NCBI GenBank assembly: GCA_973895155.1
Contig: OZ316898.1
Coordinates: 6,435,079-6,499,078, forward strand
Origin: Marsupella aquatica
Taxonomy: Eukaryota; Plantae; Marchantiophyta
Direction: 5' to 3'
Length of the DNA: 64,000 bases
Shown: piece after piece, positions 14,331-45,585 of the stretch
Layout of the letters: each line of letters opens with the position of its first letter
Position numbering within the stretch: position 1 is the stretch's first letter
Made by a program: the position numbers and the translations under genes
Notes under the pieces: model-generated
Databases searched by the model: none
What the model saw: the letters and a program-made list of their open reading frames with translations, nothing else
Told to the model about the DNA's origin: nothing

Positions 14331-15834
14331 GATCCACTGTTAGGTACCCTGCCGGTCCCACTTCACTGTGCTGGAGTAGTAAAATTGCTGCCATCCTTGG
14401 TCTTGCTCCCTCTCCTGGTCCTGGCTCCCCCCCAGTCTTTTGGGCACTTCGAGTATTTTTATTGGGTTTGACAAAAACTTTAAATTTTTGTCTAAGAACG
14501 TTAGGGGTGTTTTAATCCACTCTTGAGAATTATAAGAATCAGAGTGTTTTTTAAATCAAGTGTGAGAATATTCCAAGAATACTCTAAAAGATAGGGGTAA
14601 AAAATTTCTAGAAAACATTTTATCTACTTATGTTTTAGGGTGTTTATTCCCCCAAAACTGTGCAGGTGACATGGGACCCCCCTTTGGAGTGAGGCCCCTG
14701 GGAATTATATAGGTCAGTCACTAGAGACAAAGGCAGATTGAAGTCAAAGAATGAAATGTCCCATGTTTCTCATGCTCTATAGCTATCCTTTCGTGGTGTG
14801 TATTGCAGCTGTCTACCTGTACAAAATAAATTTGCCGTGAACATGCTTGGGCTGGCCTCTTCCTTGGATCAGATCTAAGGAAAAAGCCACTAACTCAGTC
14901 CAAAGCAGCCATTCCACTCCCCTGCAAACAATTGTGGTTCTGCCACAAGTGTTTTTGTTCTTGCAAACTGTATGTCCAAAATAAATTATGAAACTGCTAT
15001 ATATGGTGAATTCATCTTCAGATTTTGTCTTATTCATATTTTGTGTTCAATATTTGAATTTTAATGTGCCTTAACAAGGTGAATCATTTGTATTAATTTG
15101 ATTTTGAATTAACTTTTAGACCCCTTTTAATTCTAGTGAATTTAGAGTATTTTGAATATATTTGGCTCCCCTCCTAAATGTTTAATTTTTCCTTTTCAAT
15201 CACTCCTTAGCTTTTTGCTCATGAGAGTGAGACAAATGAATTTGAACAATGTACACATCTTGTGTATTAAGTTCCCCCTCAAGGTTTCTTTTGCAAAACT
15301 TATGGTTTTAATTGAGTTGATTGTCCCTACCTAGAAGCAAGTGCAAATCTGTACTGTATGTGCACAACTCTTTAGTACCTTTGTACTTTCTTGGTCATAA
15401 TGTGCATTTTTGGCAAGTGAAAGGTGTCACTCAATCTTTGATGTCAATTACTCTTAATTAACAGATATTAATTTATTGGCATATAGTTGACATGTATCTA
15501 CTTCTTTTATCATAAAATAAGTCGAATGAATTACATATCACTACAAGACAAAAATAGAGGCATGTTCCAGGATGAACATGCTATATCGATCCAATTAGTT
15601 CATTCAGTGAACTTTGCCTCCTCTATCAGACCATCTAGGACATAGTTGAGATTGACCATCTAGGACATAGTTGAGATCCATGTGGGCATCCATGTTGTTG
15701 AAATTTCCAACACTATGTACTTATATATAGGCATTTGCACAAAGTGGAGATCCTTGGGCTGGCCCACCTTGTCTTGGATCGAAGATTAGGCAAGTCCAAG
15801 CCACTCCACTTTTGTGCACATGTTGCATTCAAGC

Positions 15835-16280
15835 AACTGACTAAACCCTGAGTGGAATGACAGTCATATCACATGCACTCCATGATGTTAATTAACAGAC
15901 ATTTGAAATCCTGGAATTAATGAAACTTCTCCATGACTATCTCAGTCTGTTCATGATGTATGATCAGACCAGTGATGAGCAGTTGACTAAACCCTGGAAC
16001 CCGCCCTGGAATGACAATCCTATCATACCTCAAGATGTAATTAAACAGACATTTGAACTACAAAATCTTGGAATGACACTACTCCATGACTATCTCAGTG
16101 CATGATGTATGATTAGACCAGTGACAAGAAGTTGACTAAATCCTGGAACTAAACCCTGGAATGACAGTCCTATCATACTCCATGATGTAAACAGACATTT
16201 GAACTCCAAAATCCTGGAATGAAACTACTTAATTCATGGCTATCTTAATTAGGGCCGGCATGATGTATGATTAGACCAGA
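15835..16280. repeat. Tandem repeat, ~145-bp unit x3
   Basis: GACTAAACCCTG...GGAATGACAGTC...CATGATGT...CAGACATTTGAA...CATGACTATCTC...CATGATGTATGA.AGACCAG is repeated three times, with a partial fourth copy near 16388. Confidence 0.8.
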
Positions 16281-16619
16281 CTAAGCCACTCCATTCGAAT
16301 GCTGAGATTGTTAAGCTGGCCTGGCTTGTCTGGCTTGAAATCAGGCCAATCCAAGCACTCCACTGTCCTGCAAATGTCACGAGTAGTTGACTAAACCCTT
16401 GAAAGACAGTCCACTAATGTACAGTCAAACCACTATAGCCCCGGAATTACCCCTGCTTTTGACCTATGAAGGAAATGGCCAAGCCATCACTTGAGTGGCA
16501 ATGAACGATTAGGCCAATCCAAGTGATTCCATTCTCTTGCAGAACCCTGAAATGATTGAGGCTTATCCAAGATGACGCAATTCCTTCTGGTGGACTAGAC
16601 TCTCCACCTTAATTCACAT

Positions 16620-17432
16620 CGACAGTCTGAGGCCCTTTGAGCAGTGGGAATAACTTTTGCCATCTAGTACTATATTTGGATGTCATACTTGATTTCTTCA
16701 TTCTTCCAGTGGAACATATTATGTAAAGTAAAATATTGCAGTACAAATTTAAAATTTTTCATAAGTCATTAAACTCTTAAGGTGAGGCACAGTCTGAAAA
16801 AACAATGAACTGTTAAATTGACCCACTGAGTCTGAGAAAATATTACTATACTACTACTTTCATTCTGGGTTTCTTTCCCATCACATTTCAAAGTGAATGA
16901 TTCAGATATCTGATATAAAGTGAAGATCTTTGGGCTGGTGTTTTTCAACTGACCTCAAAATTCTAATATCTGCTTTGCAACATTTGACACTCAGGTTGTT
17001 GTGCAATGCTATATATAATGCCAAATCTACCCAGTGAGCATAGGGCTTAAGAATATGGATTCATAGTAAGCCTGCTCAATGACCATGTAATTGAACCCTA
17101 ATTGTTCTGATGGCCAAAAGAGAGTGTTGTGATTGGGACTGATCTATTCTTTGAGGAAAGCAAAGCCCAAGGATCTACACTTTAGTTAGATATTTAAATA
17201 ATTCAAGTCAAATGTTAAATGATAGGGGTATTTTAAATATTAATAAGCTAATTAAAACTTTATCCTTTCTTTCTCATCTTATCTTGGATTTGAGAAAAAA
17301 TTTTGAAATTTGTATTGCAACATTTTACCATATAAATTAGATTCCACTTGAAGGAATGACCAAAAGATGACATTCAAATATGGTCATAGAAGACAAAAGA
17401 TGTTCCCACTGCAGAAGGGCCTAAGATTGACG
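16620..17432. mobile_element. Foldback/MITE-like inverted-repeat element (~810 bp)
   Basis: 16620-16760 is a diverged reverse complement of 17295-17432 (GGCCCTT...GCAGTGGGAA, ATATTTG.ATGTCAT, AGTGGAA, TTGCA.TACAAATTT). Hairpin-family half sites at ~16905-16945 and ~17150-17200 are also mirrored. Confidence 0.55.
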
Positions 17433-20400
17433 AGATTTCCCAACATTGACAAGATTTCAAGCAACCAGAATCGTTTTGAAAGTGGAGATCCTTGAGCTTC
17501 GGCAATCCAAAGGGCATCATGAGCTAGATCTCCATTCTGAGTTCTTCTGAAGACTCCTTGATATGTGGCAGAGTGTAGTGCACGTAATGTGGGTATATAT
17601 CAATAGAAAGCTGCCCAAAAGTGGAGATGCTTGGATTGACCTTCTCTTGGGACACAAGGCCAGTCCAAGCCACTCCACTCTTGTGCAACCTTCTGAATTC
17701 ATCATAGAGATCATACAATAATGTCGATGGAGATGTAATTCGTTCTCGTGTACCTCATGTACCTTCATTCGCATTCCCTTTTGCCTCGTCCAAAATTGTC
17801 AGAAATTTAATCAATTAGCTCTAACTCTCGAGCTAAAGAGTTGATGTTCGGAAGTAATTTGAGCATAGTTAAATGTGACGTAGATATCTGCACGGAAGTG
17901 GAGATACTTGGACTGATATTTTCTTCGCAGAAAAGGCCAGTCCAAGCCCCTCCACTCTCGTGCAAACTTCTGAATTCGAGCGTGCCCGAAAATCTGACTG
18001 CAATCCTTCTCCTGGGGACATTTCCTGTTAGTCAATCATCTCCTGGGACGTTAGTTGTCGGGAATTTCCGCACTAGTCTCCCCGACCATGAGAAATGTCA
18101 ATGTTCCTGGTATTGAGCCAAAACCGTGCGACCGACTTTAGTAGGACTGGTCATCTCATCCGCATGATTTGCGCCATGCAATCTCCTACGAGAATTTTGA
18201 AGCAAAGCGATTGTCCCATAGATCTGTCCCATAGATCCTGCTGCAAGGGTAGTGCCGTGTCGGGTTGTAGAGTAGACAACTTTAGGACAGTGGCATGGAG
18301 AACTTCGATGGGTTGGCTCTTCCTGTTGCAAAACTGGCCATATATGTCCAAGCGACTCCACTCTCGTGCTGACATCTGATTTGACCTGGCTGAAGTTTCG
18401 CAATTTTTTCTTATCATCAATTGATATCCACACCCTCTATGATCGACAGTTCTCTTGATGTGGCATCATAAAGAATGGAGCCAATTAAGGTATCCTCTTG
18501 AAACCAAGGTAATCTTTCAAATCTGGCATTATAATTATCTAGCCAGAACCGTCCAATGGAATCCAGCCAAAGGCTTCTGAATTAATTACGTACGTTGCGA
18601 ACATGTCAAAGTATGCAGAGTGTCGTCCCGAAGCCACTGCCTGGAGTTCAAGTGCTGTGGCACACTGTTTGGAGAGCCACTGCCAGGAGTTGCTGTGCAC
18701 ACTTTTTAGAGTCTGGTAGATAGCTTCGCTAAGGTGGAGATCCATGGGTTGGCATTTACCTTAGAAAGAAAAATGTCAATCCAAGCCATTCCACCATAGT
18801 GCAGAGATAAGTGAATCATCATCTAATTAATAAAAGGGTACTTGAAAGTTATACCAAGGTGGAGATTCTTGGGCTGACATTTACTTACGGAAGAAAAAGG
18901 CCAGTCCAAGCCGCTCCACAATTGTGGAGACATCTGCATCATCTCATAGATAAAAGTGTACTTGATAGCTCCCCTAGCTAATTAAGGCCGAGAGCCTTGC
19001 GCCGACATTTACTTCAAAAGAAAAAGGTGATGGAGAGCCTTGGGCTGACATTTACTTAGAAAAGAAAAAGGTCAGTCCAAGCCACTCCACTTACCATGGT
19101 GCAATATATGAATCAATTTAAATGTAAAAAGGTGCTAGATAGTTACACGAAGGTGGAGATCCTTAGGCTGGCATTTACTTGGGAAAGAAAAAGGCCAGTC
19201 CAAGCCACTCCACCATCTTGTAGATATCTGAATCTATCAGTCCAAGCCACTCCACCATCTTGTAGATATTTGAATCATCTGGATCAAATATATGGAATTA
19301 AATATAACTACTTGAAGGTGGAGATCCTTGGGCTGGCATTTATTTGGGAAAAAAAAGGCCAGTCCAAGCCACTCCACCCTCATGCAGATATATATGAATC
19401 ATCTCAAATGTGAAAAGTGCTAGATAGTTACACGAAGGTGGAGATCCTTGGGTTGGCATTTACTTGAGAAAGAAAAGGCCAGTCCAAGCCACTCCATCAT
19501 CGTGCATATACCTGAATGATCTTAAAGACGTACACTAACATTCTCTAAGGTCTCGCTCGATATCGGTCCAAGTTTCGACATTGAATACAAAATTCTCGTA
19601 ATGTATTGCTGAGTGGAAATAATCGGGTGTGCTCCTGAGGTCTACATCAACCAGCTCCCACTGATGCCCCGGTCTGATGCCAATTCCGTTTTGAATGGCC
19701 ATGCCCAGCTCACACTGATAAGTGCATGCAATACGGCTGTATTGAAGTGATGCTGGGCCTGCCGTGTTCCTTCCGATGGTAGACTAGTCCAAGCTACGTA
19801 CTCCACTCATTCGAGGTTGGAATTTCGTTCTCGTGTCCAGAGAGAGAGAGAATGTGCTTGAGATCCCTAAGCCTTTGAAAGCAATCGTCGCACAATTCAG
19901 TGCAATTGCATGTGAGGCCAGCTACGTGGCATAATGGATTGCATAAAAGCATAATTCTAGCAATTCCACCTTGAACCCTCCGCAAAGTCCGCAGAATAAG
20001 AATGTCAAGGACTTTCGTGCGGATTCGTAAGCAGACAAATGATACGCGCGTAAACTCAATCTATTCTTCAGTATGCTGTTGCATGTCAAGAAGACAGTAC
20101 GTTGGACAAGAGTGAAGACAGCTAAACAAGCTGGAGGGGATGCTAGAGCTGGCCTTTCATTCGTTGGAAAGGCCAGTCCAAGCCACTCACTCTACTCTCG
20201 TTCGATCCGACTTATGAATATACCTCGCACGAAATCACTGGAACCTCAAACATATCTCCGAGTTGCGTTTCCAGTCGTTTGTATTCGATTGCAGCCAATT
20301 TTCAGAAGGTATGACTTCTGGTCCAACATGGTCTTGCGGTCCGATGAAAACTGAAATACGGGAGCTAGCCTAGTGCGTACGTTGCTGAAGGAACATGGAG

Positions 20401-21055
20401 CTTCTTGGGATTAACTGTTTCAAGAGAAAACTCCTGGACCACTCCAATAAACTTCAGCATCGTGAAGACACCTCTCTGTGGCGTTCGCTGCATGGGTACA
20501 CAAATCATGTTTGGCTGCTGGCCACGGCACTACGTATAACAGACACGATGATGGACAGAATGATGAACAAAATCGCTATGCCAGAATTGAGACAGTCCCC
20601 AACGAGTACCTGAATCTCAGGTAAGTAAGACGAACTTTTTCCCTCAGTGCTGCTAGTTCGTGAGATTGAACTTATTTGTTTCACGTAACACAGAAACATA
20701 GCTCCTCCTAGCTGCTAACAGCCTTGCACGAGTCAAACCACTCGAAGAAAGCTAGTTCTCTGCTCACAGACTTGCACATTTTTCAAGAAGTCTCGATGAG
20801 TGGTGTGGGGTAACTGGTAAGCTCTGTTGCTGCACACCATACTGCTGTAACTTGTCCTGAGTTGCCACTTATATACATAGGTCGCTCTGGTTTTTTTAAT
20901 GAATCGTCACAACATCTGGCCGAGGGGACCACGTACTGCGCAGTAAAGTATAATTAAATCATTTATAGCAAAATGCGCCAAAAACGGGGATACAGTGTCA
21001 AAAGGCAGGGGGCCCAATAAAGAGGAGAAAACAAGAGCGCCAAAAAGAGAGAGAA
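17420..21055. repeat. Left arm of a large modular inverted duplication
   Basis: Inverted matches: 17420-17740 with 36100-36460; 17810-18830 with 34540-35535 (and 17880-18830 with 32930-33800); 20010-20210 with 28450-28620; 20570-21055 with 33800-34280. Confidence 0.85.
18715..19525 (+). repeat. Short diverged tandem array (~7 units) of the hairpin repeat, orientation A
   Basis: AAGGTGGAGATCCTTGGGCTGGCATTTACTT...AAAAAGGCCAGTCCAAGCCACTCCACC at ~18731, 18857, 19030, 19151, 19316 and 19436, plus partial units. Confidence 0.9.
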
Positions 21056-22196
21056 TATTCTGCCAATATCAAAAGTGAAACTAGCCGGGGCTGACATGTC
21101 TTGTTTGTCCTCATTTTTTCCAAGAGAGAATTCGTAATGGGGTGAGAGTCATTCTCTGCGAGTGTGGGATGGACGGACTAACCCAGTTAATTACGCAAAT
21201 ACTTATATATAGTCAAGTCATCTGTGTGCCATTAAATAAATATATATGTATACCTTAATATATTTGAAGGCTTAGCCTAAGAAGTTTTTATTTAATATAC
21301 GAATATTAATAAAAGTCCATGAAATTTTCATAGTGAGCTTCTACATATCTTGATTGTGCATTCTATCTTGAAACTTAGTTATATTAACAGGAAATCATGA
21401 ATTGAAGCTACACACATATATGGCGTTGACAGATAAGTTTGGGTATTAAACAAATCCATCAACAAGGCAATTTAGAACACACAGTTTGAGTGAAAGTTTG
21501 GTGACCGTGGAGACAGGCTATCCACCTCGTTCAGGTCAAATCTAGACATATGTCTGAATAGTTTTCAGATTAAATCTAAACCATACGATGCTTGAAAACT
21601 GCTGCAATTGGCTTTACAAGAGCTTGACAGAGGCCCAGTCAGTTGTCATCTGTATGATTTTACATTCAGTTGGCATATGTATGATTTTACATGGCAAGCA
21701 GTGGGCCCAAGCAAATACTTATGTGAAGTGTTCATTTTGTCTGGAATTTTAGACTACCGGCGGTTGTGGGAAACATTTCAGGCCAGATCGATAGACCTTA
21801 GACCCAGGCTTACACCTTGAGCAGTGGCACAGAATTCAATCTCGGGGAATCAAAATCTAGATAAAAGGCCCTCCCTCAAGGTACTCACCCTTAGACCACC
21901 TCTCGCGAGTGGTGGTCCAAATATTTCCAAACTTTGGGTACATTCAAGGTGGATTGCATTCCTTAAACTTCCTTTCTCGAGTTTATCTATAGGAGTGTAT
22001 CTTTAGAACAAGAAATGGCTCGACACCCCTGCTTTGATAGAAAAACTCACTAGTATAACAGATGAAATCAAGGTAGAAACATAGTCAGTGCATATTAATG
22101 TACAGTAACGAGTGAGAGAAAGATAGATACCGCTCTAACCTGTCTTCCCATTTCCCAATAAAGCCCGGCATAGACCGCCATCAGACCAGTGTTGAC

Positions 22197-22380
22197 TGCT
22201 CAATTATGAGAGCACGTCACTTAAGCAACGTTTATGTAAAGTCTTTGCTTTTCAGACACTCTGTCGGCTGAGGTTCAATCAACCTTTGCTCAATTATTAG
22301 AGCGCGTCACTTAAGCAACGTTTATGTAAAGGCATTGCTTTTCAGACACTCTGTCGGCTGAGGTTGAATCATCCTTCGCT
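22197..22380. repeat. Tandem duplication, ~90 bp x2
   Basis: TGCTCAATTAT.AGAGC.CGTCACTTAAGCAACGTTTATGTAAAG...CAGACACTCTGTCGGCTGAGGTT occurs twice. Confidence 0.85.
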
Positions 22381-22439
22381 CAGGTTACGTTCATTCGTTC
22401 AAGTCAATTCGGAATCCGTGGTCGGAATCCCCCCCTACT

Positions 22440-24480
22440 ACAGGAGTTATTGTAGAAGACTTGACCGTGTTCACCGCCGTAAAATGCTCGTGATCCGCAT
22501 CGGACTATCGGAGTGAAGAACAGTGAATGCATGCATTGCACCGCTGATTAATCAACTACTGCGGTATGCTGACCCCAGAATTTGTAGAGGAATGCACGAT
22601 CGATTCTGAAAGCAGGATGTTGATGCCTACTCTGTGACAATATTATTGGTCAGGCAGACTGGTAACCAATTCGACCTATATAATTATGGTGCTTTAGCAA
22701 CATCAACGTGTCTGGTAATGGTCGGGCTCCAAAGCGGCAAAGTTAGCCCATTTCGAGTTGACTTGAAGACTATCGCAAACTGTGGAGAGAATGGCGAGCG
22801 CGTTATTCGAGAAGCTTGTCGGCTGCAGTCGGACCAGCCTCCTTCCTGCCAAGTACAACCAGCCGCCCAGGTGTGTCGTTAGTGACACCCAAAACTTATG
22901 CGAATGGTCTGTGGAATTCCATGTGCAAACCGTCCAGGTCTGGTTCGAATTGCCGAACAACTTCAACGATCGATAGGAAAGTAAACCTATTTTTAAGTTG
23001 TTAAATTGATAGAACTGTGGCATGCACGAATTAGATAACCGTGGAAGGGCATCTTCCATGTTCTGAAGACCTTCCTATGCTTTATCGGTGGATCTATCTC
23101 TACCCTCCATCATTTCAATGACGAAATTAAGTCTTACAACATGATCGAGAAGACGCCACCAGAACTGTAAGGCTAATTAAGGCAGGCCTGTTTGTTGCAA
23201 TGACGCTGAGAAGAGTGCCAACAGCCAAAGTTGCCAACCCCTGATGTCGGAGCGTTCTACTGTACGTCATGAAGAGTCAAAGTACCCACGTACAGTTCTA
23301 TCAATTTAACAACTTAATTCGGTTTAGCTTCCGGCCGGTGGATAGCCTGTTCCACGGTCAGCAAAGTTTTGCAACCCCTGTTCTTCAACTCCACCAGAAA
23401 AAGAGTTCGGCAACGTATGGGCTTCCTCCAATTCAACAACAGTTTTGCTGTACTAGCTCGATGATCGTTCAAGAGTAAAGATTTCGCAAAATTATGACGG
23501 GATCTCGCCTTCACTCATGCTCGGGATGCCTCCGTCATGAAGGTCCACAAGTAGAATTGGGAAGATACAGAAACCCTCGCAAGTGAGAAATCCAGCAACC
23601 AAAAGGGAACACATGGGCTCCAAATTCTCTTTCGATGCCGGTCTTCTAGATGCTGTGCCGTTTGCCACTTAAAATTTTGGAAAAGTTTTCATAAATGAAA
23701 TCACTGGAAAAGGATCTTTTGTTCGGATTCTTCCCAAATCTATGATCTATCCATGCATCCCCTCCCCCTAGCAAAGACGATAATAAATGGTCAAAGTATT
23801 CGTTGGATCATCGTTGACAGTGGCGTAAGCATTCCGTAAATAATTCCGGCTTTTGGTGCGCTGCACGTACAGTGTGATTATCCAACCCCCTCTTGGCTCG
23901 AGCTCGAAGTAAAGCGATCGCGCGACACCCCCCCGAACTCAGGATCCTGTTCCTTGTCTTCTAGCTTACCGAAATCATGAACCCGGGGCAAGGTGTTGGG
24001 CGGTGACCGTGTGATACTGTTGGTGCTGCTGGAGTCTTCGGCTTCGAAGTACTCCTTCCTCTCCTGTCATGTGCTGCGCAGTTTGGGGACCGTCCACTAG
24101 GCTTGTTGTAATTCATTTTCCCAGTTTCTTAGGTACTCGCATCAGTGACAATTGTTCACTCCCCAGCCTAATTTCATCGAAAACAAGTACTGTCTGCGTT
24201 GGGACTGAAATCAGTGGACGTCGTTCTCTAAAATAAATTGAGTTTCATGATCCTCTCTCAATTTAACAATAGTTAAAATCTCTGCCGGTCGATCGCACGA
24301 CTCAAAAGGTAAGCTTGCCATTCCTTCGGAGATTACACGGCTTGTGTCGCCGACCTGCAAACATCCACTGTGTCTCAGCAGCTGGTTTGGAGTCGACATC
24401 CTGCACACATTTGCGGGATGCCTGGGGCCCCTGATCGACCAATGCAAAATGTTTCTTGAAGAGGCAAAATTCCCGTGAAT
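22440..24480 (+). pseudogene. Possible decayed LRR receptor-like kinase fragments
   Basis: Frameshifted motifs: YADP/EF...DVDAYSVTILL...TG (kinase VIII-IX-like, ~22563-22672), CEW..GIPC (LRR N-cap-like, ~22898-22926), EGHLP, QFNNL and GKLAIPSEITRL (~24308). Confidence 0.3.
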
Positions 24481-27400
24481 GATCGGACGGAGTTACTCTT
24501 GAAGATGCAACGTTGCGGCTATGATGAGAACATAGAGCAACTTGCTGTGGGTTGTTGCGGCGTTGACATGGGTGGCGTCCAGGCATTGTTTTCCTCATTG
24601 TGGGAAGGAAATGCGAGTGGCGACTTCGCTCCTTTCCTAGCAAGTGGCAATTAATTTTTGTCATAAATTCCTGGGTATGCATGTGAGCCGGTAGTGATTT
24701 CCCTAGATTTAAGGAGACTCATTTTAGAGCTGGTGACCAACCTCTTAGCTTTGAGGGGGGGAATTGCCAAGGTGTTTTCTGAGGAAGGGATCAAGCTATT
24801 CTATTTCCCTAGATCTTAGGAGAAGTCTTAGATTTGGCAACCAATTCTCTGAGCATTAGCGGATTGGATAATTAGTATACCCACATACTTATTTACTCCA
24901 GATTTTCAAGAACAAATTACGGACTCAGTAGCCGGTATCAGTTATCGATCAGCAGATCTCATCCAGCTCTCATCTATAGAATCTGCACGGAAATCTTCCT
25001 GCTCAGCGAGGCCACCAAGACGACCAAAGGGGTCTGCCGAGTGGAAAAAGTGAGTCCACGGGGTCAGCCGAGTGCATTCTTCCTGCCAAGTGCATTCTTC
25101 CCTTCAATCTTCGTTTAGCTAAGACGTCATGTGAAAAAGTGACTCATTGAGCGAGGAAGTCAAGTGAAAAGGTGACTCAGCGAAGTCAAGAGAGTGAGAA
25201 TTCTGCAAACTAAGAGCAAAAAACTCGATCACCAAATTGATATTCAAGTTGATCAGGCAATTAAGGTTCACCGGTATGGGTAACTGGATGACGTCTAACT
25301 GATCGTTAACAACCTCTGCTTAAGGACTACTGTAATCCTGGACACAAAACTGTAGCTCCGAGTCACCGCATCCTGCTATTTCGCAGCCCCAGATCGACTC
25401 CATTCTCTTCGTGAACAGTCCGATTCTCCGCATCCCGGCCACTTTGCTTTTTCGCTTTTGCTTTTTCCACAGTCCCAGACTTCATTCTCTTCGTGAACAG
25501 TGGTAAGCTGCTCCTTAAACAGAGGGAATCAGAACAGCACCACTTGACGACGTTGCTTCACAGGTGCGGCGCTCTGTGTGGCAGTGTGAGATTCCGAGGA
25601 GGGAAGGACATGTCCACGGAATGATGTAATCGATACACCTTCACTGTGATAAGAAAATGTTGTCTCCATCCGTAACATCCGGAGGCGGAGCAGCTAACTT
25701 GACTCGATCAGTACGTCGTCAGGGTTTCAAGCATTCTCCACTTTCTATCTGCGGCCGACGATGAACCCACATGGATTTCAGAACGTGCCCCTGCCCGCCA
25801 TACTTCACAGACAAGGCTCCGTTGTTCGTGACGCTGCAGCACCGCCACCATGTCTGTAGGGAAGAGTACGTTCGGACTTAATGTGGAGGCTCAACGCCAT
25901 TAATTTCGGATTCGTTTCAGTGTCGAAACATTGCCCCGTCTCATGCATGAGAAAAGGCAGTTCTCCAAAGTCAACGAAAATGTCCCGCTTTTCTTCGAAG
26001 CACTGAACTGTACAAACGACTTCATTAGACAATTAGATCTCCTTGGAAGTATGTTGAATTCAGTAGTAGTGCCCATTCATCTGTGGATTGTGACTTGGGC
26101 TAGCTTGGGGAGTTTTCGACTGCGAACAATATGTGCAATGCTGATTTCATGGCTCACTTGGCTCTCCTCGTACTTTACATCTATTCATCCATACTCTCCC
26201 TCATTTGCTTTGGCCCATTCGAGTCCTTGTGCTTCTTTAAACTCATTCGTTCATCCATTTTTTTGTTATGAAATCCGATCGATTACCTGATCCTTTCCGG
26301 GCTATATCTAAAACCATACTGAGAAGAAAGAACAGTAACTTCGATATGTACCTCTTTCACACTCATTACTGTACGTACGTTAGGATATATGCGTGCAACA
26401 TGTCCACTTTTCATGTACTGTTTTCAGTGTGGAGAGCTTGAAGGTTGTAACTGTAGTTAGTGCGTGAGACTTAGTCAAATGTTAAATTGTTATCTGATCA
26501 ATTGCTACATGTCAAAGGTGTTCATCCAACCCATAACTTAATGCACTAGATGTGATGCCGAAGCTCACTAGCTCACGATTCAAAGCCCACGAGGAGAGCC
26601 GCCATGGCATATGTATATGCACGTTTGACCCGTTCCCTTACCTCAGTTCATTTTGTATCTTTGAGAATGGATTCACACGGATGTACGTGATGGGGCCTCC
26701 AGGCAAGTGCAATGCAATTCTTTTACTTAGATTCTTTGTTTTAATAAGAAGCTTTTTTGGTGGGGTAGAGGATGAAGGGAAATCCTGCCCTGATCAACCA
26801 GCCCTCTGCGCATCCAACTGGCTGAAGGTCTAGGGTGGGGAAAACCGCTCTCAGCTAAATTACAGAAAGGAAAAGAGGAAAGCCTCCGGTTTACCTGCCC
26901 GAAATTCTTGATTGATCGAGCCAACGGAGGTTGCACAAATAGATATATCTGGTACATTCATAAGCCTCCGTCACGGGAGCAGCTAAAAACAGAAGAACCC
27001 AAGTTGAGACTAGCTTTGTTCTACAAAATTCAAGAACCCAAGAAGGAAACTCATGAATCCCAATCTTGTGCAGAATTGTCAAAAATCTAAGGTCTCACTT
27101 TTTTCTGCTAAATGTTGTTGGTCCTCTACGTTTTTGGTCTAGCTAGCTAGCAAGAGTAAGGCTGTTCCAAAAAACTATTTTGTCAGAGGATGCTGAGAAC
27201 CTGTACCTCGTTGAGGCAGTTGTTTAGATGGAGCTCTGTTTTTTTTATGCCATGATGCGCAGTCCCCAATTGGAGCAGGTCCGTAGCAGGTGTTCGAAGT
27301 TAAAACTCTGTCAGCTATTCCAATCAATGGTTCCCCAGATGGTGCATGTCAGATGGAAGTACAATCGGGCGATGCTGGTGTGTGAATTCATCCTAATGTA

Positions 27401-29439
27401 CAACTAGTACGTACGTTCAACTCTGAGGGGGCTCACTCACATAAGCTCCGTCACATACTGCCCAGCATCAAAGAAGCTAGATCTGTTCTCGCCACCATTG
27501 ACCTTCACGTACGTGCTATACACGATCAGAGGAACTCCAAATAAAAAACATTCCGGCCGGGTGAATAGACCCTAAAGCTCAAGTGAGCAGTGGCGCATGA
27601 TACAATCTTAACTGATACAGTATGAACATCTAAAAATGCCTTTGAGATCATGGATTTGTTTATCCAAATCTGTTCGTCAAGGATCTTTTGCACTAAATTG
27701 CCGTGCATGACTGGTTTCTTCCCGGTGAGACCTTCGAGAGAAGTTACAGTCCGAGACGAAAGAGTAAACCCCAGTTTCAATTTGACATAATTGGTGGAAT
27801 AATTCTCAAACACATTCCCGTTTGACTTACTGCACAGTACTGTGGCTACCGCCCGAGTGTAAGTTGTCAACCATTAAGAAAATGTGAGCGATGATCTATA
27901 AATAAGTAACTTGAACTTCAGGAGAAACAGCAGTATGATTTGTAGCAATCTTTGATCGAGCTTACCATACAACAGACACCAGTCAATGAGGAGCTTGAAG
28001 CTTGTCCATGTCTGTGACCAGAGGAGGAGCTATTTTTCGATCAATCTAGGAGCATCTGCTAGGAGCGCTGCGCGAAAGAGTTCTCCTAGCTTAGCTTGTG
28101 ATTCAGGTCCTCTTTCGGGACTATTCAAATCATACATACCCATTTTGTCGATCATTCTGCTGTCGTCAGCGAGACATCATTGCCATGAATTCCATACCCG
28201 GAGAACATGGCAGCTACCGACGGAGCTGCAAGATGACAGCAGATGTCTACACGATGCTGCTATTTCTTTGATATGTAATTGGAGGCCATTGTTGTACATA
28301 CTGACATATAGCAACTTACATGGCTAGATATTGAATCGAACCCGACGACCATGTTGTGCGCGCATGCAACATTCCTTCCGACATGGCTGCAATCTACTCT
28401 GATCGATCGATACTCAACAAACATAAACGATTTGAAATGTGTTCAGACGTCTTGAACAGAGTGGAGTGGCTTGGACTGGCCTTTCCTGTTAATGGAAGGC
28501 CAGCCCAAGCTTGTCCACTCCGGTTCAGCTGTCTTCTTGACCTGCAATAGCACATGGAAGAATAGATTGAGATTATGTACATTTGTCTGCTTTCGTTCTA
28601 ATCCTGAAAAAGGACTTTGCCTGCATGTAGCATTCTTTTAATTGGGTTTAGAGAAGTGACGATGCACCCTTTCAGCCTGGCCATGATTCAGATATTTGCA
28701 CTATGATGGAGTGGCTTGGACTGGCCTTTTTCTTTCTAAGTAAATGCCAGCCCAAGGATCTCCATCTTCGTGTAACTATCTACCACCTTTTTCAATTAAT
28801 TTGAGATGATTGGCTTCAACTGGCCTTTTTTTTCTTCCATATAAATATCAGCCCAAGGATCTCCACCTTAATTCACATAGCTATCTACCACCATACAGAA
28901 GGATATATAGCTCGACGATTGTATGCCTACATGCATGTTCTAATATATTAACATTGAATGAGATGGCTGCAGGAGAGTGGAGGGTTTGGACTGACCCTGC
29001 AGTGTGCGAAGAGAAGCCCAATCCAAGCATCTCCCCTTGGGTTCAGCTTTCTAAGTATGTACGTACTATTTATTTTAGCCCATATCACTTGCATTCACTC
29101 TCTGCCATGTCTGGAGGGCTTAACAATGACCTGTTCCAGAATTTTAGGAATTGAAACATTTGGTGGCATGGCTCCGAAGTGAGTAAGGCTGCATGAAGAA
29201 CGAAGACACAGAACTTTGTGGGATGCAACGTCAAATGTACAGAGTGAGATTGAAGAGGGCCCTAAGTATATAGACTCATAGCGAGTCCATTCCTAAGGTA
29301 GTTGTAATTAAGCTGCAAGGTTGATAGTTTAATTAGATGCCTGTAGGAGAGTGGAGTGGCTAGCTGGACTGGCCTTCGAGATTATTGGATATCTACACTT
29401 GTAGCTGGACTGGCCTTCGAGATTATTCTATATCTACAC

Positions 29440-32400
29440 TTCACATCATTCAGATATCTACACTATGGTGGAGTGGCTTGGACCGGCCTTTTTCTTTCCA
29501 AAGTAAATGCCAGCCCAAGAATCTCTACCCTGGAGTAGCTATCTAGCACCCATTTACCTTAATTTGAGAGATTCAGATATATGTAGGATGATGGAGTGAC
29601 TTGTACTAGCCTTTTCTTTTCTAAAGTAAATGTCAACCCAAGGATCTCCACCTTAGTGTAACTATCTAATACTGTTTTACATTTGAGATGATTCAGACAT
29701 ATGATGGAGTGGCTTGGACTGGCCTTAACTTTTTCTTTCCCTTCCAAAGTAAATGTCAGCCCAAGGATCTCCACCTTCTTGTAACAATCTAGCACGCACC
29801 CTTTTAATATTTGAGATGATTCAGATTTTTGCACGATGATGGAGTGGCTTGGACTGGCCTTTTTCTTTCCCAAGTAAATGCCAGCCCAAGGATCTCCACC
29901 TTCTTGTAACAATCTAATGCACACCCTTAAGTTTATATTTGAGATGATTCAGATTTTTGCACGATGATGGAGTGGCTTGGACTGGCCTTAACTTTTTCTT
30001 TCCAAAGTAAATGCCAGCCCAAGGATTTCCACCTTCTTGTAACCATCTAGCGCGCACCCTTTTAATATTTGAGATGATTCAGATTTTTGCATGAAGATGG
30101 AGTGGCTTGGACTGGCCTTAACTTTTTCTTTCCCAAGTAAATGCCAGCCCAAGGATCTCCACCTTCTTGTAACAATCTAATGCACACCCTTTTATATTTG
30201 AGATGATTCAGATTTCTGCACGATGATGGAGTGGCTTGGACTGGCCTTAACTTTTTCTTTCCGAAGTAAATGCCAACCCAAGGATCTCCACCTTCTTGTA
30301 ACGATCTAGCGCGCACCTATTAATATTTGAGATGATTCAGATTTTTGCATGATGATGGAGTGGCTTGGAGTGGCCTTAACTTTTTCTTTCCCAAGTAAAT
30401 GCCAACCCAAGGATCTCCACCTTCTTGTAACAATCTAACACGCACCCTTTTATATTTGAGATGATTCAGATTTCTGCACTATGATGGAGTGGCTTGGACT
30501 GGCCTTAACTTTTTCTCTCCCAAGTAAATGCCAGCCCAAGGATCTCCACCTTCTTGTAACAATCTAGCGCGCACCCTTTTAATATTTGAGATGATTCAGA
30601 TTTCTGCACGATGATGGAGTGGCTTGGACTGGCCTTAACTTTTTCTTTCCCAAGTAAATGCCAGCCCAAGGATCTCCACCTTCTTGTAACAATCTAGCGC
30701 GCACCAATTAATATTTGAGATGATTCAGATTTTTGCACGATGATGGAGTGGCTTGGACTGGCCTTAACTTTTTCTTTCCCAAGTAAATGCCAGCCCAAGG
30801 ATCTCCACCTTCTTGTAACAATCTAATGCACACCCTTAAGTTTATATTTGAGATGATTCAGATTTTTGCACGATGATGGAGTGGCTTGGACTGGCCTTAA
30901 CTTTTTTTTTCCAAAGTAAATGCCAGCCCAAGGATCTCCACCTTCTTGTAACAATCTAGCGCGCACCAATTAATATTTGAGATGATTCAGATTTTTGCAC
31001 GATGATGGAGTGGCTTGGACTGGCCTTAACTTTTTCTTTCCCAAGTAAATGCCAGCCCAAGGATCTCCACCTTCTTGTAACAATCTAATGCACACCCTTA
31101 AGTTTATATTTGAGATGATTCAGATTTTTGCACGATGATGGAGTGGCTTGGACTGGCCTTAACTTTTTCTTTCCCAAGTAAATGCCAACCCAAGGATCTC
31201 CACCTTCTTGTAACGATCTAGCGCGCACCTATTAATATTTGAGATGATTCAGATTTTTGCATGATGATGGAGTGGCTTGGAGTGGCCTTAACTTTTTCTT
31301 TCCCAAGTAAATGCCAACCCAAGGATCTCCACCTTCTTGTAACAATCTAACACGCACCCTTTTATATTTGAGATGATTCAGATTTCTGCACTATGATGGA
31401 GTGGCTTGGACTGGCCTTAACTTTTTCTCTCCAAAGTAAATGCCAGCCCAAGGATCTCCACCTTCTTGTAACAATCTAGCGCGCACCCTTTTAATATTTG
31501 AGATGATTCAGATTTTTGCACGATGATGGAGTGGCTTGGACTGGCCTTAACTTTTTCTTTCCCAAGTAAATGCCAGCCCAAGGATCTCCACCTTCTTGTA
31601 ACAATCTAATGCACACCCTTAAGTTTATATTTGAGATGATTCAGATTTTTGCATGATGATGGAGTGGCTTGGACTCACTGGCCTTAACTTTTTCTTTCCA
31701 AAGTAAATGCCAGCCCAAGGATCTCCACCTTCTTGTAACTATCTAGCACGCACCTATTAATATTTGAGATGATTCAGATTTCTGCACGATGATGGAGTGG
31801 CTTGGACTGGCCTTTTTCTTTCCCAAGTAAATGCCAGCCCAAGGATCTCCACCTTCTTGTAACAATCTAATGCACACCCTTAAGTTTATATTTGAGATGA
31901 TTCAGATTTCTGCACGATGATGGAGTGGCTTGGACTGGCCTTAACTTTTTCTTTCCAAAGTAAATGCCAGCCCAAGGATCTCCACCTTCTTGTAACAATC
32001 TAGCGCGCACCTATTAATATTTGAGATGATTTAGATTTTTGCACGATGATGGAGTGGCTTGGACTGGCCTTAACTTTTTCTTTCCCAAGTAAATGCCAGC
32101 CCAAGGATCTCCACCTTCTTGTAACAATCTAATGCACACCCTTAAGTTTATATTTGAGATGATTCAGATTTTTGCACGATGATGGAGTGGCTTGGACTGG
32201 CCTTAACTTTTTTTTTCCAAAGTAAATGCCAGCCCAAGGATCTCCACCTTCTTGTAACAATCTAGCGCGCACCAATTAATATTTGAGATGATTCAGATTT
32301 TTGCACGATGATGGAGTGGCTTGGACTGGCCTTAACTTTTTCTTTCCCAAGTAAATGCCAGCCCAAGGATCTCCACCTTCTTGTAACAATCTAATGCACA

Positions 32401-33030
32401 CCCTTAAGTTTATATTTGAGATGATTCAGATTTTTGCACGATGATGGAGTGGCTTGGACTGGCCTTAACTTTTTTTTTCCAAAGTAAATGCCAGCCCAAG
32501 GATCTCCACCTTCTTGTAACAATCTAGCGCGCACCAATTAATATTTGAGATGATTCAGATTTTTGCACGATGATGGAGTGGCTTGGACTGGCCTTAACTT
32601 TTTCTTTCCCAAGTAAATGCCAGCCCAAGGATCTCCACCTTCTTGTAACAATCTAATGCATACCCTTAAGTTTATATTTGAGATGATTCAGATTTTTGCA
32701 CGATGATGGAGTGGCTTGGACTGGCCTTAACTTTTTCTTTCCCAAGTAAATGCCAGCCCAAGGATCTCCACCTTCTTGTAACAATCTAACGCGCACCCTT
32801 TTATATTTGAGATGATTCAGATTTTTACAAGATGATGGAGTGGCTTGGACTGGCCTTTTTCTTTCCCAAGTAAATGCCAGCCCAAGGATCTCCACCTTGG
32901 TGAATTATCTGGCACCCTTACATTTGAGATGATTAAGATTTCTGAAGGCATGGTGGAGTGGCTTGGACTGGCTTTTTCTTTCCCAAGTAAATGCCAGCCC
33001 AAAGATGTACACCTTCGCGTAACTATCTAC
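29440..33030 (-). repeat. Homogeneous tandem array of 28 units (mostly 129-133 bp), each holding a ~98-nt imperfect hairpin; inverted relative to the 18.7-19.5 kb array
   Basis: Unit TTTGAGATGATTCAGATTTTTGCACGATGATGGAGTGGCTTGGACTGGCCTTAACTTTTTCTTTCCCAAGTAAATGCCAGCCCAAGGATCTCCACCTTCTTGTAACAATCTAGCGCGCACCAATTAATA. I counted 28 GGAGTG(G/A)CTT cores from 29470 to 32955. Confidence 0.97.
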
Positions 33031-35537
33031 CACACTTTAAAGGCAATCTGTGTGACACCGCGGACAGCACTTCAACTCTAGGCATGCAGTGGCTTTGGGA
33101 CCACACTCGGCAAACCTAATTTCTTCGGAACTTGTCTGATCAAGAAGATTGACATTTCGTGCCGCAATTCAGAAGCTGGATACGATTCATTTGGACGGTT
33201 GTAGCTGATATATATATATTGCCAGCCTAATTGAAAGACTACCTTAGTCTCAATACGCACGTACCTTGGCTCCATTCTTCATGATGCACATAAAAAAAAA
33301 CTATCGATTGATGGGACGAAACAATGCGACGCTTCAGCAAGGACAAATCAGATGTCGACACGAGAGTGGATTTGCTTGGACGTACGTATATGGCCTGCTT
33401 TCAACAGGAAACCCAACCGATGGAAGTTCTCCACTGTCCTACGGTTGAATACTTCACTATCCAAAACGACACTTGTAGCAGGATCTATGGGACAATCACT
33501 CTGCTACAACATTAATTAATTCTGGTAGCAGATTTCGCAATTTCGTGCTGCAAATCACGCGGATGACACTTTGGCTGGGCCAAGTAGCATTGACATCTTC
33601 GTGGTTGGGGAGTGCGGGAATCCCCAACATCAATGTCCCAAGATGTGATTGACCAAGAGGAAATGTGGCCATGAGAAGAATACGACTGAGTTTTTTGCGG
33701 ACGAGCTCGATTCAGAAGTTTGCACGAGAGTGGAGGAGCTTGGCCTAATTGTCTGCAAAGAAAATACCGGCCCAATTCGTATCTCCACTTCCGTGCAGTG
33801 TCTCTCCTTTGTTGGCTCTTGTTTCTCCCCGTCTGGCGCATTTTGTTCTGCGTGATTTAATTATACTTCAATGGACAGTACGTGGTCGATCCCCGGACCC
33901 CATGCATGTGGGGTGAAGATTATTCATTTAAAAACAAACGAGTGCCACCTAGGTATAATGGCAGTTAAGTTCAGGACAATCATATTACAGCAATATATAT
34001 GGTGTGTAATGACAGAAATTACCAGTTGCCGGTCATAGGACACACCACTCATGCAGAGTTCTTGAAACTTGTGCCAGTCGTGAAGAAGTACGTACCTATC
34101 TTCTAGTGGTTTGACTCGTGCAAGGCCGTGAGCAGCGAGGAGGAGCTCTCTTGCAATGTTAGTCCAAACAACTAAGTTCAATCTCACGAATGTAGGAGCG
34201 CTGACGGAAAGATCGAGTTCTTCTTACTTTGCCGAGATTCAGTTACTCTTAAGGGACTGTCTCAATTCAGGCAATAGCCACAGGTGTTGTTGATCATTTG
34301 CACCTGGAAATAGTCGAGTGTGCGCCTGGAAATAGTCGAGTGGGCTTGGAACGACATCGAGAGGACTGTAGAGAATGTTTCGACTGGTAACACAGATAGA
34401 TCGACGTGGCCTATTGACTCTCAGCCTGTCTATTGCATTCTTTTACAGTGACAGTACACCCTGTTACCACTGAGATGATTCAGAGTAAATTCCAGTCCAA
34501 GCATCTCCACCTTAGCGTAGCTAGCTAACTATCACCCTTTTACCTGTCAGATGATTCAGATATCTGCACGATGGTGGAGTGGCTTGGACTGGCCTTTTTC
34601 TTTTCGAAGTAAATGCCAACCCAAGGATCTCCACCTTCGCTCAGCCATCTACCGCACTTTAAAGGCCGCACGGGCCACAGCAATTCAACTCCAGGCTGTC
34701 GCTTAATTCGTCACGACACTCAGCATACCCTTTTCTGAACTCGTCTGAGAAAATTGACATGTTCGTGACGCAATCAATCAGAAGCTTAATTTGTGGCTGC
34801 TGGATTCGATTGGACGGTTGTCGCTGGATATATATTATGCCAGATTTGAAAGCCTACCTTCGTTTCACTACAGTACGTACCTTCGCTCCATTAATTCTAC
34901 ATGATGCCACGGCCAGAAAACTATCGATCACATACGGTGCGGATATCGATTAATGGGAAACATGTGCGACACTTCAGCGGGGCCAAATCTGTTGACGCGA
35001 GTGGATTCGCTTGGACATGGCTTGTTTTTCAACAGGAAACCACCCTATGCAAACGGTCGACTCTACAAGATTCCGACCGGGCAACTAGCTGCAGCAGGAT
35101 CTATATATGGAGCAGTCACTTCGCTTCAAAATTCTGATTAGTAGCAACTTTTTGCAATTTCATGCCGCAATCACGCGGATGAGATGATGTACAGTTAGTC
35201 GCACAGTTTTTGCTGGGTACAATAAGTTGGGAGCATTGACATCTCTCAATCATGGTCGGGGAGTGCTGAAAGCCTCGCCGTAGAACGTCCCAGGATATGA
35301 TTGACTAACAGGAAAGGCGGCCAGGAGAAGAACACGAGTGAGAAATTTGGGGACGAGCTCTATTCAGAAGTTTGCCCGAGAGTGGAGGGGCTTGGACTGG
35401 CCTTTTCTGCGAAGAAAATGTCAGCCCAAGTATCGCCACTTTCGTGCAGATGTCTACTTCACATTTAACAATGTCCAAACGACTTCCGAACAAGGCATGT
35501 TCAGCATTTTATCTCGAGGGTTGGAGCTGATTAATTC

Positions 35538-35893
35538 CAGGTGTGGGCAGTCCTCTGTAAGTGCAAACTCAATAAGTGTAAAAAGCTTGCTAACTGTAAT
35601 GCGTGCTGATCGTCCCCTTTTCTTGACACAATGTCTGCACATTTTTTGCACCGCTCTGAAACCCTCGATAAGTGTACATGCACACTTATGGTAAAGGGTC
35701 AACCCCATCAAAATGCATTTACTGATAACTGCATGCCCTTTTTGGGTAGAGATAAAACATGCACAGTTTTTGGAGTAGGAGACCAAATTGAGAAAGGGAT
35801 ATCTATGTCACCAGACTGCTCGCTGAAAGTGGGTGCACTCTTATCAGAGCACAAGTCTATGGGTTTGCACTTATCACATACTGCTCACCCCCA
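35538..35893. mobile_element. MITE-like insertion
   Basis: Imperfect terminal inverted repeats GTGTGGGCAGT...TAAGTGCAAAC and GTTTGCACTTATCACATACTGCTCACCCC. It is absent at the equivalent point (~17810) of the left arm. Confidence 0.5.
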
Positions 35894-36018
35894 TTTAGTT
35901 CAAACCACGTACATGCTTCTTCTTGGGAGTGTACATTTAGGCGGAGCGTTCATTGTACCCCTCCATCAACCAAGCATCTAATTATTAGAACTTTCAATAG
36001 CATGGACCTGCTAAGAAT

Positions 36019-36074
36019 TGAACCTTGGACCTCAGGTGTACATGAATGTAGTGCTCTACCACTCAGCTACATAA
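36019..36074 (-). mobile_element. tRNA-derived SINE head or tRNA pseudogene
   Basis: Minus strand GTAGCTGAGTGGTAGAGCACTAC...GAGGTCCAAGGTTCAATT has A and B boxes; the acceptor and anticodon stems are not intact. Confidence 0.5.
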
Positions 36075-37563
36075 CAGGCCCTTCATGCATGGTCTATCAT
36101 AGTTCGAGTGAGGTTCATTTCTAACAACATCAGCAGTTATGACCTTGATGAATTCAGATGGTTGCATGAGAGTGGAGTGGCTTGGACTGGCCTTGTGTCA
36201 AAAGAGAAGCCAGTCAATCCAAGCATCTCCACTTTCACACAGCTTTCTACTATACACTTCAGCGCTCATCAAGTGCACTACCACTGTGACATATCATGGA
36301 GGCTTCAGAATGACCTAGTACAGATTTGTCATTGCCATCATGCTGGGCTTTGGATTTGCAAACGACCAGCCCAAGGATCTCTGCTTCCAAAACAATTTTG
36401 GTAGCAGTTCATAAATTCAGCCACGTGGTACGAGCTTGGAATCTTGACAATCTCAGGCCATTATGGCCGTGTTGGACATCAATATTTAAAGACCAGGGCA
36501 GAATTAAGCATCCAAGACTTCTTGCCTTTTCACATTCCAGTCCAACTTATTTTCAAGGTTTTTCCATTTTTGCCAGGCGGGAGAATTTCACCCTGTGTGG
36601 ACCAGAAGATACTAGGACTATTCCTTAATATTAGTTAATTCCTACATTAGTTGTGACTGTGAGATCTCCCTTGACTCGGATCTCCTTAGATTTAAGGATA
36701 ACCGTTAGATTCTAGCTTCTGGGGCCTGTAGTTAGATGCCAGGAAACTGGCTACTGGAAGACAAAATTCCAATAAATTTATGCCGATAGTGATATAGACT
36801 TTTCAGAGAGGTGGAATCCAGAGAATTTTTGCCACCAAAAAATTGTTATAATTCCAGTCACAACATATTTCTTAGTGGCAAATTTTTTCTAGATTCCTCT
36901 ACTCCCTAATTTTAGAAAAAAAAATGTCATCAATGGTGAAATCTGGTGGATCTAGGTTTGATGACGGACAGAGTGGCTCGCTTGTATATATGCTCTCCTC
37001 TCCAAGGAATTGTCTTTTATCAACTCTCTAAGCAAAGTTTGAGTTCTACCTAACATAAGATACCCAAACAAATATTCATTTTGTCTATGTACATTGCTCC
37101 TTGAGTTGCTCTTGCTCCTTAATTGGTTTTAACTAAACTTTTGAACCACTCTCTCAAATTTTACTTAGTGTTTTTGCTATTGTTTATACCATAACTGTGT
37201 TTCAGCATGGATACAGTTGGTTTTGAGATTTTGTGACTCATTCGGACAGCCAGTCATTAAGTTACGCTTTAATTTGTCTTTTTCTAAATTTGACTTAGTT
37301 ATAAGGTTTGGTCTAAGCAATCTAACTGAGCCCTGGCCCTGGAGGGTGATGTCTGTAACCCAGTCTTCCCCTCAGGCTCCAACCCTCAGGCTCCAGGGCT
37401 TACCACACCCAATCCATGCCAAACCATATATTCATACTAGTATGATTCATTGATGAAAGTTTTATGAAGCACACAATGAAAGTAATATAGTGGGAATGTA
37501 TGCCGAAATTGACCCGGAAATTGACCCATGTACACTCAAACCAATGACGGTGCAGGCATGCAG

Positions 37564-40521: not shown

Positions 40522-40786
40522 CTATTGCCCTACAAAGGTTACCATAAGTTCCCACCCCAGACTCCCTTAATCCTAAACTTAATTGCCCTTGTAACTTCAT
40601 GTCCAAACACAGGTACACAAAATGTTCATGTTGATTGCCCAAAGGTTACCATAAGTTACCCACTCCACACTCCCTTAATCCTAATAAACTTAATTGCCCT
40701 TTGTAACTTCACGCCCAAACACAGGTACACAAAATGTTCATGTTGATTGCCCGACAAAGGTTACCATAAGTTACCCACCCCACTCT
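40522..40786. repeat. Tandem repeat of ~110 bp, interrupted by a TIR element and resuming at 45351
   Basis: TTGCCC..CAAAGGTTACCATAAGTT.CCCAC...CTTAATCCTA..ACTTAATTGCCCTTGTAACTTCA.G.CCAAACAC. The same sequence continues at 45351-45445, and related copies lie at ~39178-39320 and ~39491-39620. Confidence 0.75.
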
Positions 40787-44911: not shown

Positions 44912-45585
44912 TGGGGAAAGACATAGAAAGGGGATAAGGGAAAGAGTAGATGCTTGCCATAAACACTCCTTCGTGTCATGGCAACTTTGTTCACCACCCC
45001 TACTCAACAAACAGTCAGCAGCAGGAAGGGTGGGGTTTTAAGGGCTGCCCATGCTGGTTTTAAGGGCTGCCCAGGCATGGGATGGGCAGGGGCAACGAGG
45101 GAACCCAAAAAGGTTGGCCTGAAACTGACTTGTGACACAAAAATGAGGAGAGTCTTCAGGTCGGGTGTTGGGCAGGAAGGGTGTGATTTTAAGGGCTGCC
45201 CAGGCATGGGATGGGCAAGGGCAACGAGGGAACCCAAAAAGGCTGGACTGAAATTGAATTGTGACACAAAAATGAGGAGGGTCTTCCGGTGGGGTGTGGG
45301 GGAGAACCTAGGTGCATTTTATGACAAAACAGGGACTAGTCTCCGTGAATCCCACTCTCCCTTAATCCTATACTTAATTGCCCTTATACTTAATTGCCGT
45401 TGTAACTTCATGCCCAAACACAACACAGGTACTTCATCTTCATGTTGTCCCGCACTCTCTTGCTCCTCTATCCTCCGGTTGCCCAATCGTTGGTAACTAC
45501 AAGACCACCTCACAAGCTCCCATTCCCCACCACTCGGGTTTAGGGTTTAAGCTCTTTTCCTCTCCACATTCTGTCGTCACTTCAC

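Follow-up and report, generated by a model that had tools for sequence, protein, structure and literature searches.

In the liverwort Marsupella aquatica (GenBank assembly GCA_973895155.1, contig OZ316898.1), a gene-free stretch of ~21.5 kb carries about 50 copies of one ~100-nt hairpin, all of which lie between positions 14837 and 36395 of the 64,000-bp window analyzed here (bp 6,435,079 to 6,499,078 of the contig, forward strand; all positions below are those of the window). The copies are disposed in two arms of opposite polarity, fold into stable stem-loops, keep their stem pairing where they differ in sequence, and are more alike than the spacers that separate them. On these sequence properties we tentatively interpret the locus as a lineage-specific, locally amplified cluster of hairpin RNA precursors resembling plant microRNA (miRNA) genes (MIRNA genes); the competing interpretation, that it is a palindromic satellite, is nearly as likely.

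A hairpin family confined to one locus

A preliminary description of this DNA reported some 50 copies of a conserved hairpin in a ~21-kb locus, and that estimate holds. An nhmmer profile made from units of the main tandem array finds 55 loci at E<1e-3, and a covariance model, which scores structure as well as sequence and was run over both strands of the whole window with its filters off, finds 47-48 at E<0.01; every example position given in the preliminary description coincides with one of these hits. With two or fewer mismatches allowed, the window has 42 occurrences of a 5'-arm 19-mer, and 100 shuffles have none. The remaining 42 kb of the window contain no copy even at five mismatches to either arm, bar a chance-level 17/21 match at 46826 (discussed below). 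About eight of the copies are degenerate and have lost the fold.

Both of the tandem arrays that had been noticed are real (Table 1). Tandem Repeats Finder places the main one at 29448-33029, with a period of 129 bp and 27.8 copies, and also reads it with a period of 262 bp. Units two steps apart are more alike (identity 0.95) than adjacent units (0.92) and three groups of units are identical, so the main array is a recently amplified dimeric higher-order repeat. The ~7 units of the smaller array are more diverged than those of the main one. With its head-to-tail monomers and higher-order period the main array is satellite DNA in structure, but it takes up only 3.6 kb of the 21.5-kb locus and leaves the dispersed copies unexplained.

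It had been foreseen that thousands of copies in a known transposon family would speak against a small-RNA locus, and nothing of this kind was seen. Copy number was gauged, as a rough measure, by word depth over 14700-20600 from contigs placed at 90% likeness or more in four runs (X1-X4). Bins containing the dispersed hairpins lie at one to two times the local baseline, and the bins with the units closest to those of the main array (19034-19230 and 19428-19624) at ~10-27 times, an excess that the local 28-unit array alone could supply; under the same settings a positive control at 14897-15684 reaches 100-300 times in all four runs. This depth excludes a young high-copy hairpin family but not an old, diverged one, since copies less than 90% alike are missed. 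The 20 open reading frames (ORFs) of the center and arms contain no Pfam domain and no transposase, so that nothing of an autonomous DNA transposon is seen there, and the outer ends of the locus have neither terminal inverted repeats nor target-site duplications. Dispersal as a family of miniature inverted-repeat transposable elements (MITEs) or other terminal-inverted-repeat (TIR) transposons was considered and rejected: polarity is uniform within each arm, the copies sit inside duplicated modules, terminal repeats are lacking, and depth at that likeness is one- to twofold.

Stem pairing, conservation and precursor-like geometry

The unit folds into a single stem-loop of ~98-104 nt, in good agreement with the ~98 nt to which the stem had been said to extend. 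It consists of a lower stem of ~15 bp, then a duplex of ~21 nt, and then a variable distal stem and loop. Fold z scores run from -3 to -7, and the folding energies of the strong dispersed copies are -48 to -59 kcal/mol. The internal mismatch that had been described as 3x3 does persist among the copies, but it is smaller than that, 2-3 nt: U.U and G.A are retained in 16-18 of 20 copies, whereas eight have the neighboring G.G closed, to G-C or G.U, and the copy at 17877 has a 1x1 mismatch. A second fixed mismatch, A.C, lies 8 nt further up and is kept in 15 of the 20 copies and closed to A-U in four. The loops are as variable as reported; there are at least four versions of the distal stem and loop, and every one of them is still paired.

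Covariation, which had been proposed as a check, was measured on an alignment of 20 diverse copies with a hand-written structure of 35 pairs, the controls being the same structure with its 3' partners slid by 1-3 columns. Standard pairs occupy 78% of the cells, compared to 35-42% in the slid controls. Compensatory changes, in which both sides of a pair have altered, are present in 12 of the 35 pairs (4-7 in the slid controls), a count that was equalled or exceeded in 6 of 500 shuffles, and the lower helix of 15 pairs accounts for eight of the 12. At pair 27-104 the split between G-C and A-U is a single event that divides two subfamilies; several other pairs display three to five pair types, which indicates more than one compensatory event.

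The ~21-nt stretch singled out earlier as the best conserved does lie in the better-kept arm, but its advantage is moderate: over the 20 copies the 20-nt 5' arm differs from the consensus at 25 places and the 3' arm at 44. The 5' arm hardly varies among the 23 core units of the array, where variation is found in the linker, the loop and one position of the 3' arm. When three paralogous modules are compared, the hairpins are 0.77-0.93 identical and the spacers, which hold most of the insertions and deletions, 0.55-0.73; two more short spacer blocks also peak, at 0.70-0.85. This difference between hairpins and spacers fits purifying selection acting on the hairpins. Gene conversion among the copies could contribute to their likeness, but it would be expected to even out the loops too, yet the loops differ. 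The persistence of the U.U/G.A mismatch argues against a simple DNA-level correction of the palindrome.

The criteria for plant MIRNA annotation that Axtell and Meyers are said to have set out in 2018 ask for one hairpin of less than 300 nt, a duplex with no more than five mismatches of which no more than three lie in asymmetric bulges, no secondary stem inside, and precise excision of one 20-24-nt duplex in independent small-RNA libraries. With the 21-mer counted from the U that opens the conserved 5' arm, 3-5 duplex positions are unpaired (3-4 in the strong dispersed copies), and asymmetric bulges are absent, in most sense copies. According to Mateos, Song and Werner (reportedly in 2010), DCL1 substrates that are processed from base to loop carry ~15-17 nt of paired lower stem under the duplex, and here 9-18 of the 20 positions beneath the 21-mer are paired in most copies. 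In the best copies the predicted first cut, 15-17 nt above the base, lands just before the U of the 21-mer, and the predicted second cut, 21 nt beyond it, where the variable distal stem begins. The modeled geometry of the hairpin thus fits that of base-to-loop plant DCL1 substrates. The structural half of the earlier suggestion of a MIRNA-like cluster is in this way borne out, by fold significance, the excess of pairing, the compensatory pairs and the geometry of the duplex.

Interpretations of the locus

As we envisage the MIRNA-like cluster, a founder module of hairpins and spacers would have been multiplied through segmental, inverted and tandem duplication. Each arm would probably be transcribed outward from the center as a long noncoding primary transcript, for which three related upstream modules (Table 1) are the candidate starts. 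These modules are ~300-470 bp long, sit directly upstream of groups of hairpins in the matching orientation, and keep a TATA-like box in all three copies, and it is their position, orientation and TATA-like box that suggest outward transcription. The third of them, copy R2, may mark a second transcription unit within the right arm. A Dicer-like enzyme would then make a first cut ~15-17 bp up from the stem base and a second one 21 nt beyond it, releasing a ~21-nt duplex of which the U-initial and best conserved 5'-arm strand would be the guide to any target RNA. Either canonical miRNAs or less precise hairpin small interfering RNAs (siRNAs) are compatible with such a cluster as its products. 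In its strongest form, in which ~50 copies of one precursor in divergent primary transcripts of a mirror-symmetric locus would supply one abundant 21-nt guide, this would be the largest homo-polycistronic MIRNA cluster so far observed in a plant, a proposition that we consider somewhat unlikely.

A number of observations weigh against the cluster interpretation. The array units stand exactly at the limit of five unpaired duplex positions, and they fold better on the strand opposite to the one proposed (about -45 kcal/mol on the - strand versus -35 on the +). Three of five strong dispersed copies favor the proposed strand, by 7-16 kcal/mol; array units and dispersed copies therefore prefer opposite strands and the folds do not decide which strand is transcribed, so that folding in both orientations, another check proposed at the outset, gave significant hairpins but not a single preferred strand. 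Wobble pairs likewise favor no strand (46 G.U versus 47 A.C). The compensatory counts are inflated by subfamily structure and shared ancestry, one event being inherited by many copies, and concerted evolution could equally keep the hairpins more alike than their spacers. Rfam 15 contains no family that matches at its gathering thresholds (in E-value mode there are only generic sub-threshold matches to hairpins or unrelated miRNAs, of 18-29 bits against thresholds of 51-100); a literature text search for an 18-mer of the motif also gave no match. None of the five public runs that contain the stretch is recorded as RNA, and X1-X4 display a flat, DNA-like depth. As a rule, the miRNA genes of plants stand alone or form small clusters. 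An array of 28 near-identical tandem copies is atypical of them (PMC4860694, PMC9291395).

Other searches with the motif were equally negative. Twelve-mers of either arm are absent from the supplements of two liverwort miRNA papers and from the main text of PMC4788410, and an array ORF used in a protein word search found no match. Relatives were also sought in metagenome contigs: a strict pattern gave no hit, and the only hit of a looser one, a high-GC bacterial coding sequence, is a chance match.

The most serious competitor of the cluster interpretation is a palindromic satellite that was amplified locally, perhaps from a fold-back or MITE-like element, and has no dedicated RNA product. Its units would be expanded and homogenized through unequal crossing-over and gene conversion, the hairpin and its mismatches would simply be inherited from the founder, and the locus would at most attract heterochromatic siRNAs. 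The head-to-tail dimeric array, with several identical units, is like that of young satellites, and its units are the weakest folders and prefer the other strand; the strand symmetry of the G.U and A.C counts, the decay of some eight copies, and the position of the locus among transposon insertions all agree with such an origin. It accommodates less well the compensatory changes at several lower-stem pairs, the differing distal stems that are nevertheless paired, and the dispersed non-array copies, which are also kept far better than their own spacers. The array is, moreover, a mere 3.6 kb between ordinary genes, and there is no high-copy signal at 90% likeness or above. We regard this satellite origin as a substantial possibility.

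Three further explanations appear improbable to different degrees. The hairpins could act as DNA, either as cruciform dyads or as arrayed binding sites for, say, a mobile element's replication, partition or recombination protein; although the stems are long enough for extrusion and the structure is strand-symmetric, no protein gene is found within the locus or next to it, 40-60 bp separate the half-sites, and the fixed mismatches and arm-asymmetric conservation have no obvious DNA-level reason, and we judge this improbable. The mirror homology that runs past the hairpins (the pairs beginning at 17461, 17809 and 20556 in the list below) is what a long inverted-repeat siRNA locus would have, in which a single transcript covering the two arms would fold back along 5-8 kb and yield heterogeneous siRNAs on dicing. 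With arms that are unequal and only 68-76% identical, many insertions and deletions, and a 7-kb spacer, no long perfect duplex could form, and the local hairpins are far more stable than arm-to-arm pairing, so that this too is quite improbable. Least probable by our estimate, and indeed very improbable, is a decayed giant DNA transposon with hairpin arrays in its subterminal regions, much as in CACTA or long-TIR Mutator elements. Two inverted arms with repeat arrays around a central segment do recall such an element, but apart from the hairpin motif the outer ends share no terminal inverted repeat or common terminus, the arms are not co-terminal (the left one extends 2.6 kb further outward), the central ORFs of 65 or more amino acids hold no transposase remnant, and depth indicates no extra copies.

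If it is a cluster of precursors, the locus has partial parallels in both kingdoms. Zebrafish miR-430, Xenopus miR-427 and primate C19MC comprise dozens of near-identical precursors head to tail over ~10-100 kb. The M. aquatica locus shares with these the amplification of near-identical hairpins in one place, which allows high output of one seed family; it differs in that they belong to another kingdom with other processing machinery, show no homology to it and are not known to have a mirror layout, whereas this locus is mirrored. The clusters of rice miR395 are among the polycistronic MIRNA clusters of plants. Like those, and like the clusters of Physcomitrium and Marchantia polymorpha, the present locus has co-oriented precursor-like hairpins in a short noncoding stretch, each composed of lower stem, ~21-nt duplex and loop, and copies that arose from tandem duplication. 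Those clusters have 2 to ~7 hairpins per transcript, whereas here there are ~50, with a 28-unit satellite-like array and a mirror layout, and the sequence matches no described family. Few clusters of plant miRNAs are on record, in rice (PMC4860694) and in Physcomitrium (PMC4860694, PMC9291395), and the only polycistronic MIRNA locus described in M. polymorpha is the two-hairpin MIR390-MIR11676 (PMC9291395).

The repeat-like side of the locus also has counterparts. It shares with the hairpin small-RNA loci derived from MITEs or fold-back elements, for which Piriyapongsa and Jordan reportedly proposed a model in plants in 2008, a ~100-nt near-palindrome with a short loop that is possibly both a repeat and a Dicer substrate, but here the copies lie in duplicated modules of uniform polarity and are not independent insertions, and copy number is not high. 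With dyad-symmetric satellites it has in common a head-to-tail array, a higher-order repeat and a monomer able to form a hairpin or cruciform; it differs from them in the small size of its array and its setting between ordinary genes, in its single hairpins with unrelated spacers, and in the compensatory changes of its stems.

Should the cluster interpretation be true, plants, like some animals, would also be able to raise small-RNA dose by satellite-style amplification, and the locus would be a living example of the birth of a MIRNA family, from a founder hairpin through segmental and inverted duplication to a tandem array. In the strongest form of that interpretation it would be a plant counterpart of the miR-430 and C19MC mega-clusters that is still expanding by satellite-like amplification. 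Should the locus be silent, it would still be a clear-cut case of a repeat in which stem pairing has been kept by compensatory change, and would call for a DNA-level explanation.

Layout of the locus and its surroundings

The features of the locus are collected in Table 1. Hairpins to the left of the center match best on the - strand and those to the right (28439-36395) on the + strand, with a sole exception, the copy at 17102-17201; this mirror polarity and the reversed copy are additions to the preliminary description. The center of symmetry lies near 24.36 kb. Mirror homology is found between 17461-17704 and 36405-36146 (76%), 17809-18885 and 35536-34484 (68%), 17888-19526 and 33798-32282 (68%), 20026-20193 and 28595-28458, and 20556-20901 and 28159-27872, and hence the homology between the arms reaches past the hairpins themselves. 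The right arm also contains a direct duplicate, 32869-33803/34484-35455. A three-way alignment gives the order of the founder module as array unit, spacer, degenerate hairpin, spacer, hairpin, spacer, hairpin. The central segment has no long terminal repeats and no ORF of more than 126 amino acids.

Table 1. Positions of the parts of the hairpin locus in the window
Feature	Position	Strand	Remarks and support
Left arm	14837-20473	-	~17 copies, all but one of - polarity; nhmmer, folds, covariance model
Degenerate left-arm hairpins	14837-14929, 16303-16378, 16487-16551, 18297-18380, 20374-20469	-	nhmmer, folds, covariance model
Intact left-arm hairpins	15724-15831, 17600-17700, 17877-17977, 20119-20209	-	nhmmer, folds, covariance model
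Hairpin-like copy of reversed polarity in the left arm	17102-17201	+	Covariance model 29.8 bits; nhmmer 17128-17183
Left mini-array	18707-19522	-	~7 diverged units, period 120-165 bp
Upstream module copy L	20556-20990	-	Homologous to 27872-28159 and 33826-34298; candidate promoter (putative role)
Unique mirror center	20991-27871	.	6.9 kb without a hairpin
Upstream module copy R1	27872-28159	+	Mirror partner of 20556-20901
Proximal right-arm hairpins	28439-28539, 28684-28786, 28788-28887, 28955-29057	+	Folds, covariance model
Main tandem array	29445-33037	+	28 units of 129/133 bp as a 262-bp dimer; several identical
Hairpin pair, 33346-33438 (degenerate) and 33708-33808 (intact)	33346-33808	+	Paralogue of 17877-18380 and 35002-35460
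Upstream module copy R2	33826-34298	+	73% identical to 20559-20990
Distal right arm	34481-36395	+	Hairpins 34552-34655, 35360-35460, 36150-36253
Distal right-arm remnants	34481-34540, near 35002, 36365-36395	+	Partial unit, degenerate copy and 3'-arm fragment, respectively

The left arm varies between the organisms sampled. Organism A (runs X1 and X2) is identical to the window. In organism B (runs X3 and X4) two versions of 14700-20600 are present, one the same as the window and one 0.4-7% diverged with small insertions and deletions; heterozygosity, a pool of individuals or a further copy of the locus may lie behind them. The diverged haplotype of organism B has 20 differences within 17413-17691; places could be assigned only to differences far from contig ends, which leaves six of the 20 without one. 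A 615-bp high-copy repeat is inserted in the left arm at 14981-15595, and organism B contigs join 14980 directly to 15596, showing that this insertion is polymorphic. In the right arm, ~500 bp at ~35640-36145 are inserted relative to the left-arm paralogue and carry tRNA-like A and B boxes on the - strand near 36010-36080. This insertion is probably a tRNA-derived short interspersed nuclear element; no tRNA genes were found, and ARAGORN calls none there.

The locus is flanked by exons of an NDB-type external NAD(P)H dehydrogenase (Pyr_redox_2 and EF-hand domains; ~7.9-11.1 kb, + strand) and by a pentatricopeptide repeat (PPR) gene (46.7-51.1 kb, + strand), and hence lies in an ordinary gene-bearing region. 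A protein word search with a PPR exon found one 76% relative in a Joint Genome Institute (JGI) metagenome. A PPR-SMR gene of Marchantia has been reported to yield a miRNA from its own transcript (PMC4788410), and the 17/21 match mentioned above falls, in the same sense, in the first coding exon of the M. aquatica PPR gene (46826-46846, + strand). We reject this site as an origin or target of the hairpins and judge the match to be due to chance: the likeness ends at ~23 nt (E at least 0.28), the local fold is not significant (z = -2.2), and against the 3'-arm strand the site has five mismatches, one of them at position 11. Between the hairpin locus and the PPR gene lies a separate element (40524-45422), unrelated to the hairpin family, which is bounded by inverted repeats that are 86% identical (40787-40958/45350-45177) and contains internal tandem repeats of 112 and 129 bp.

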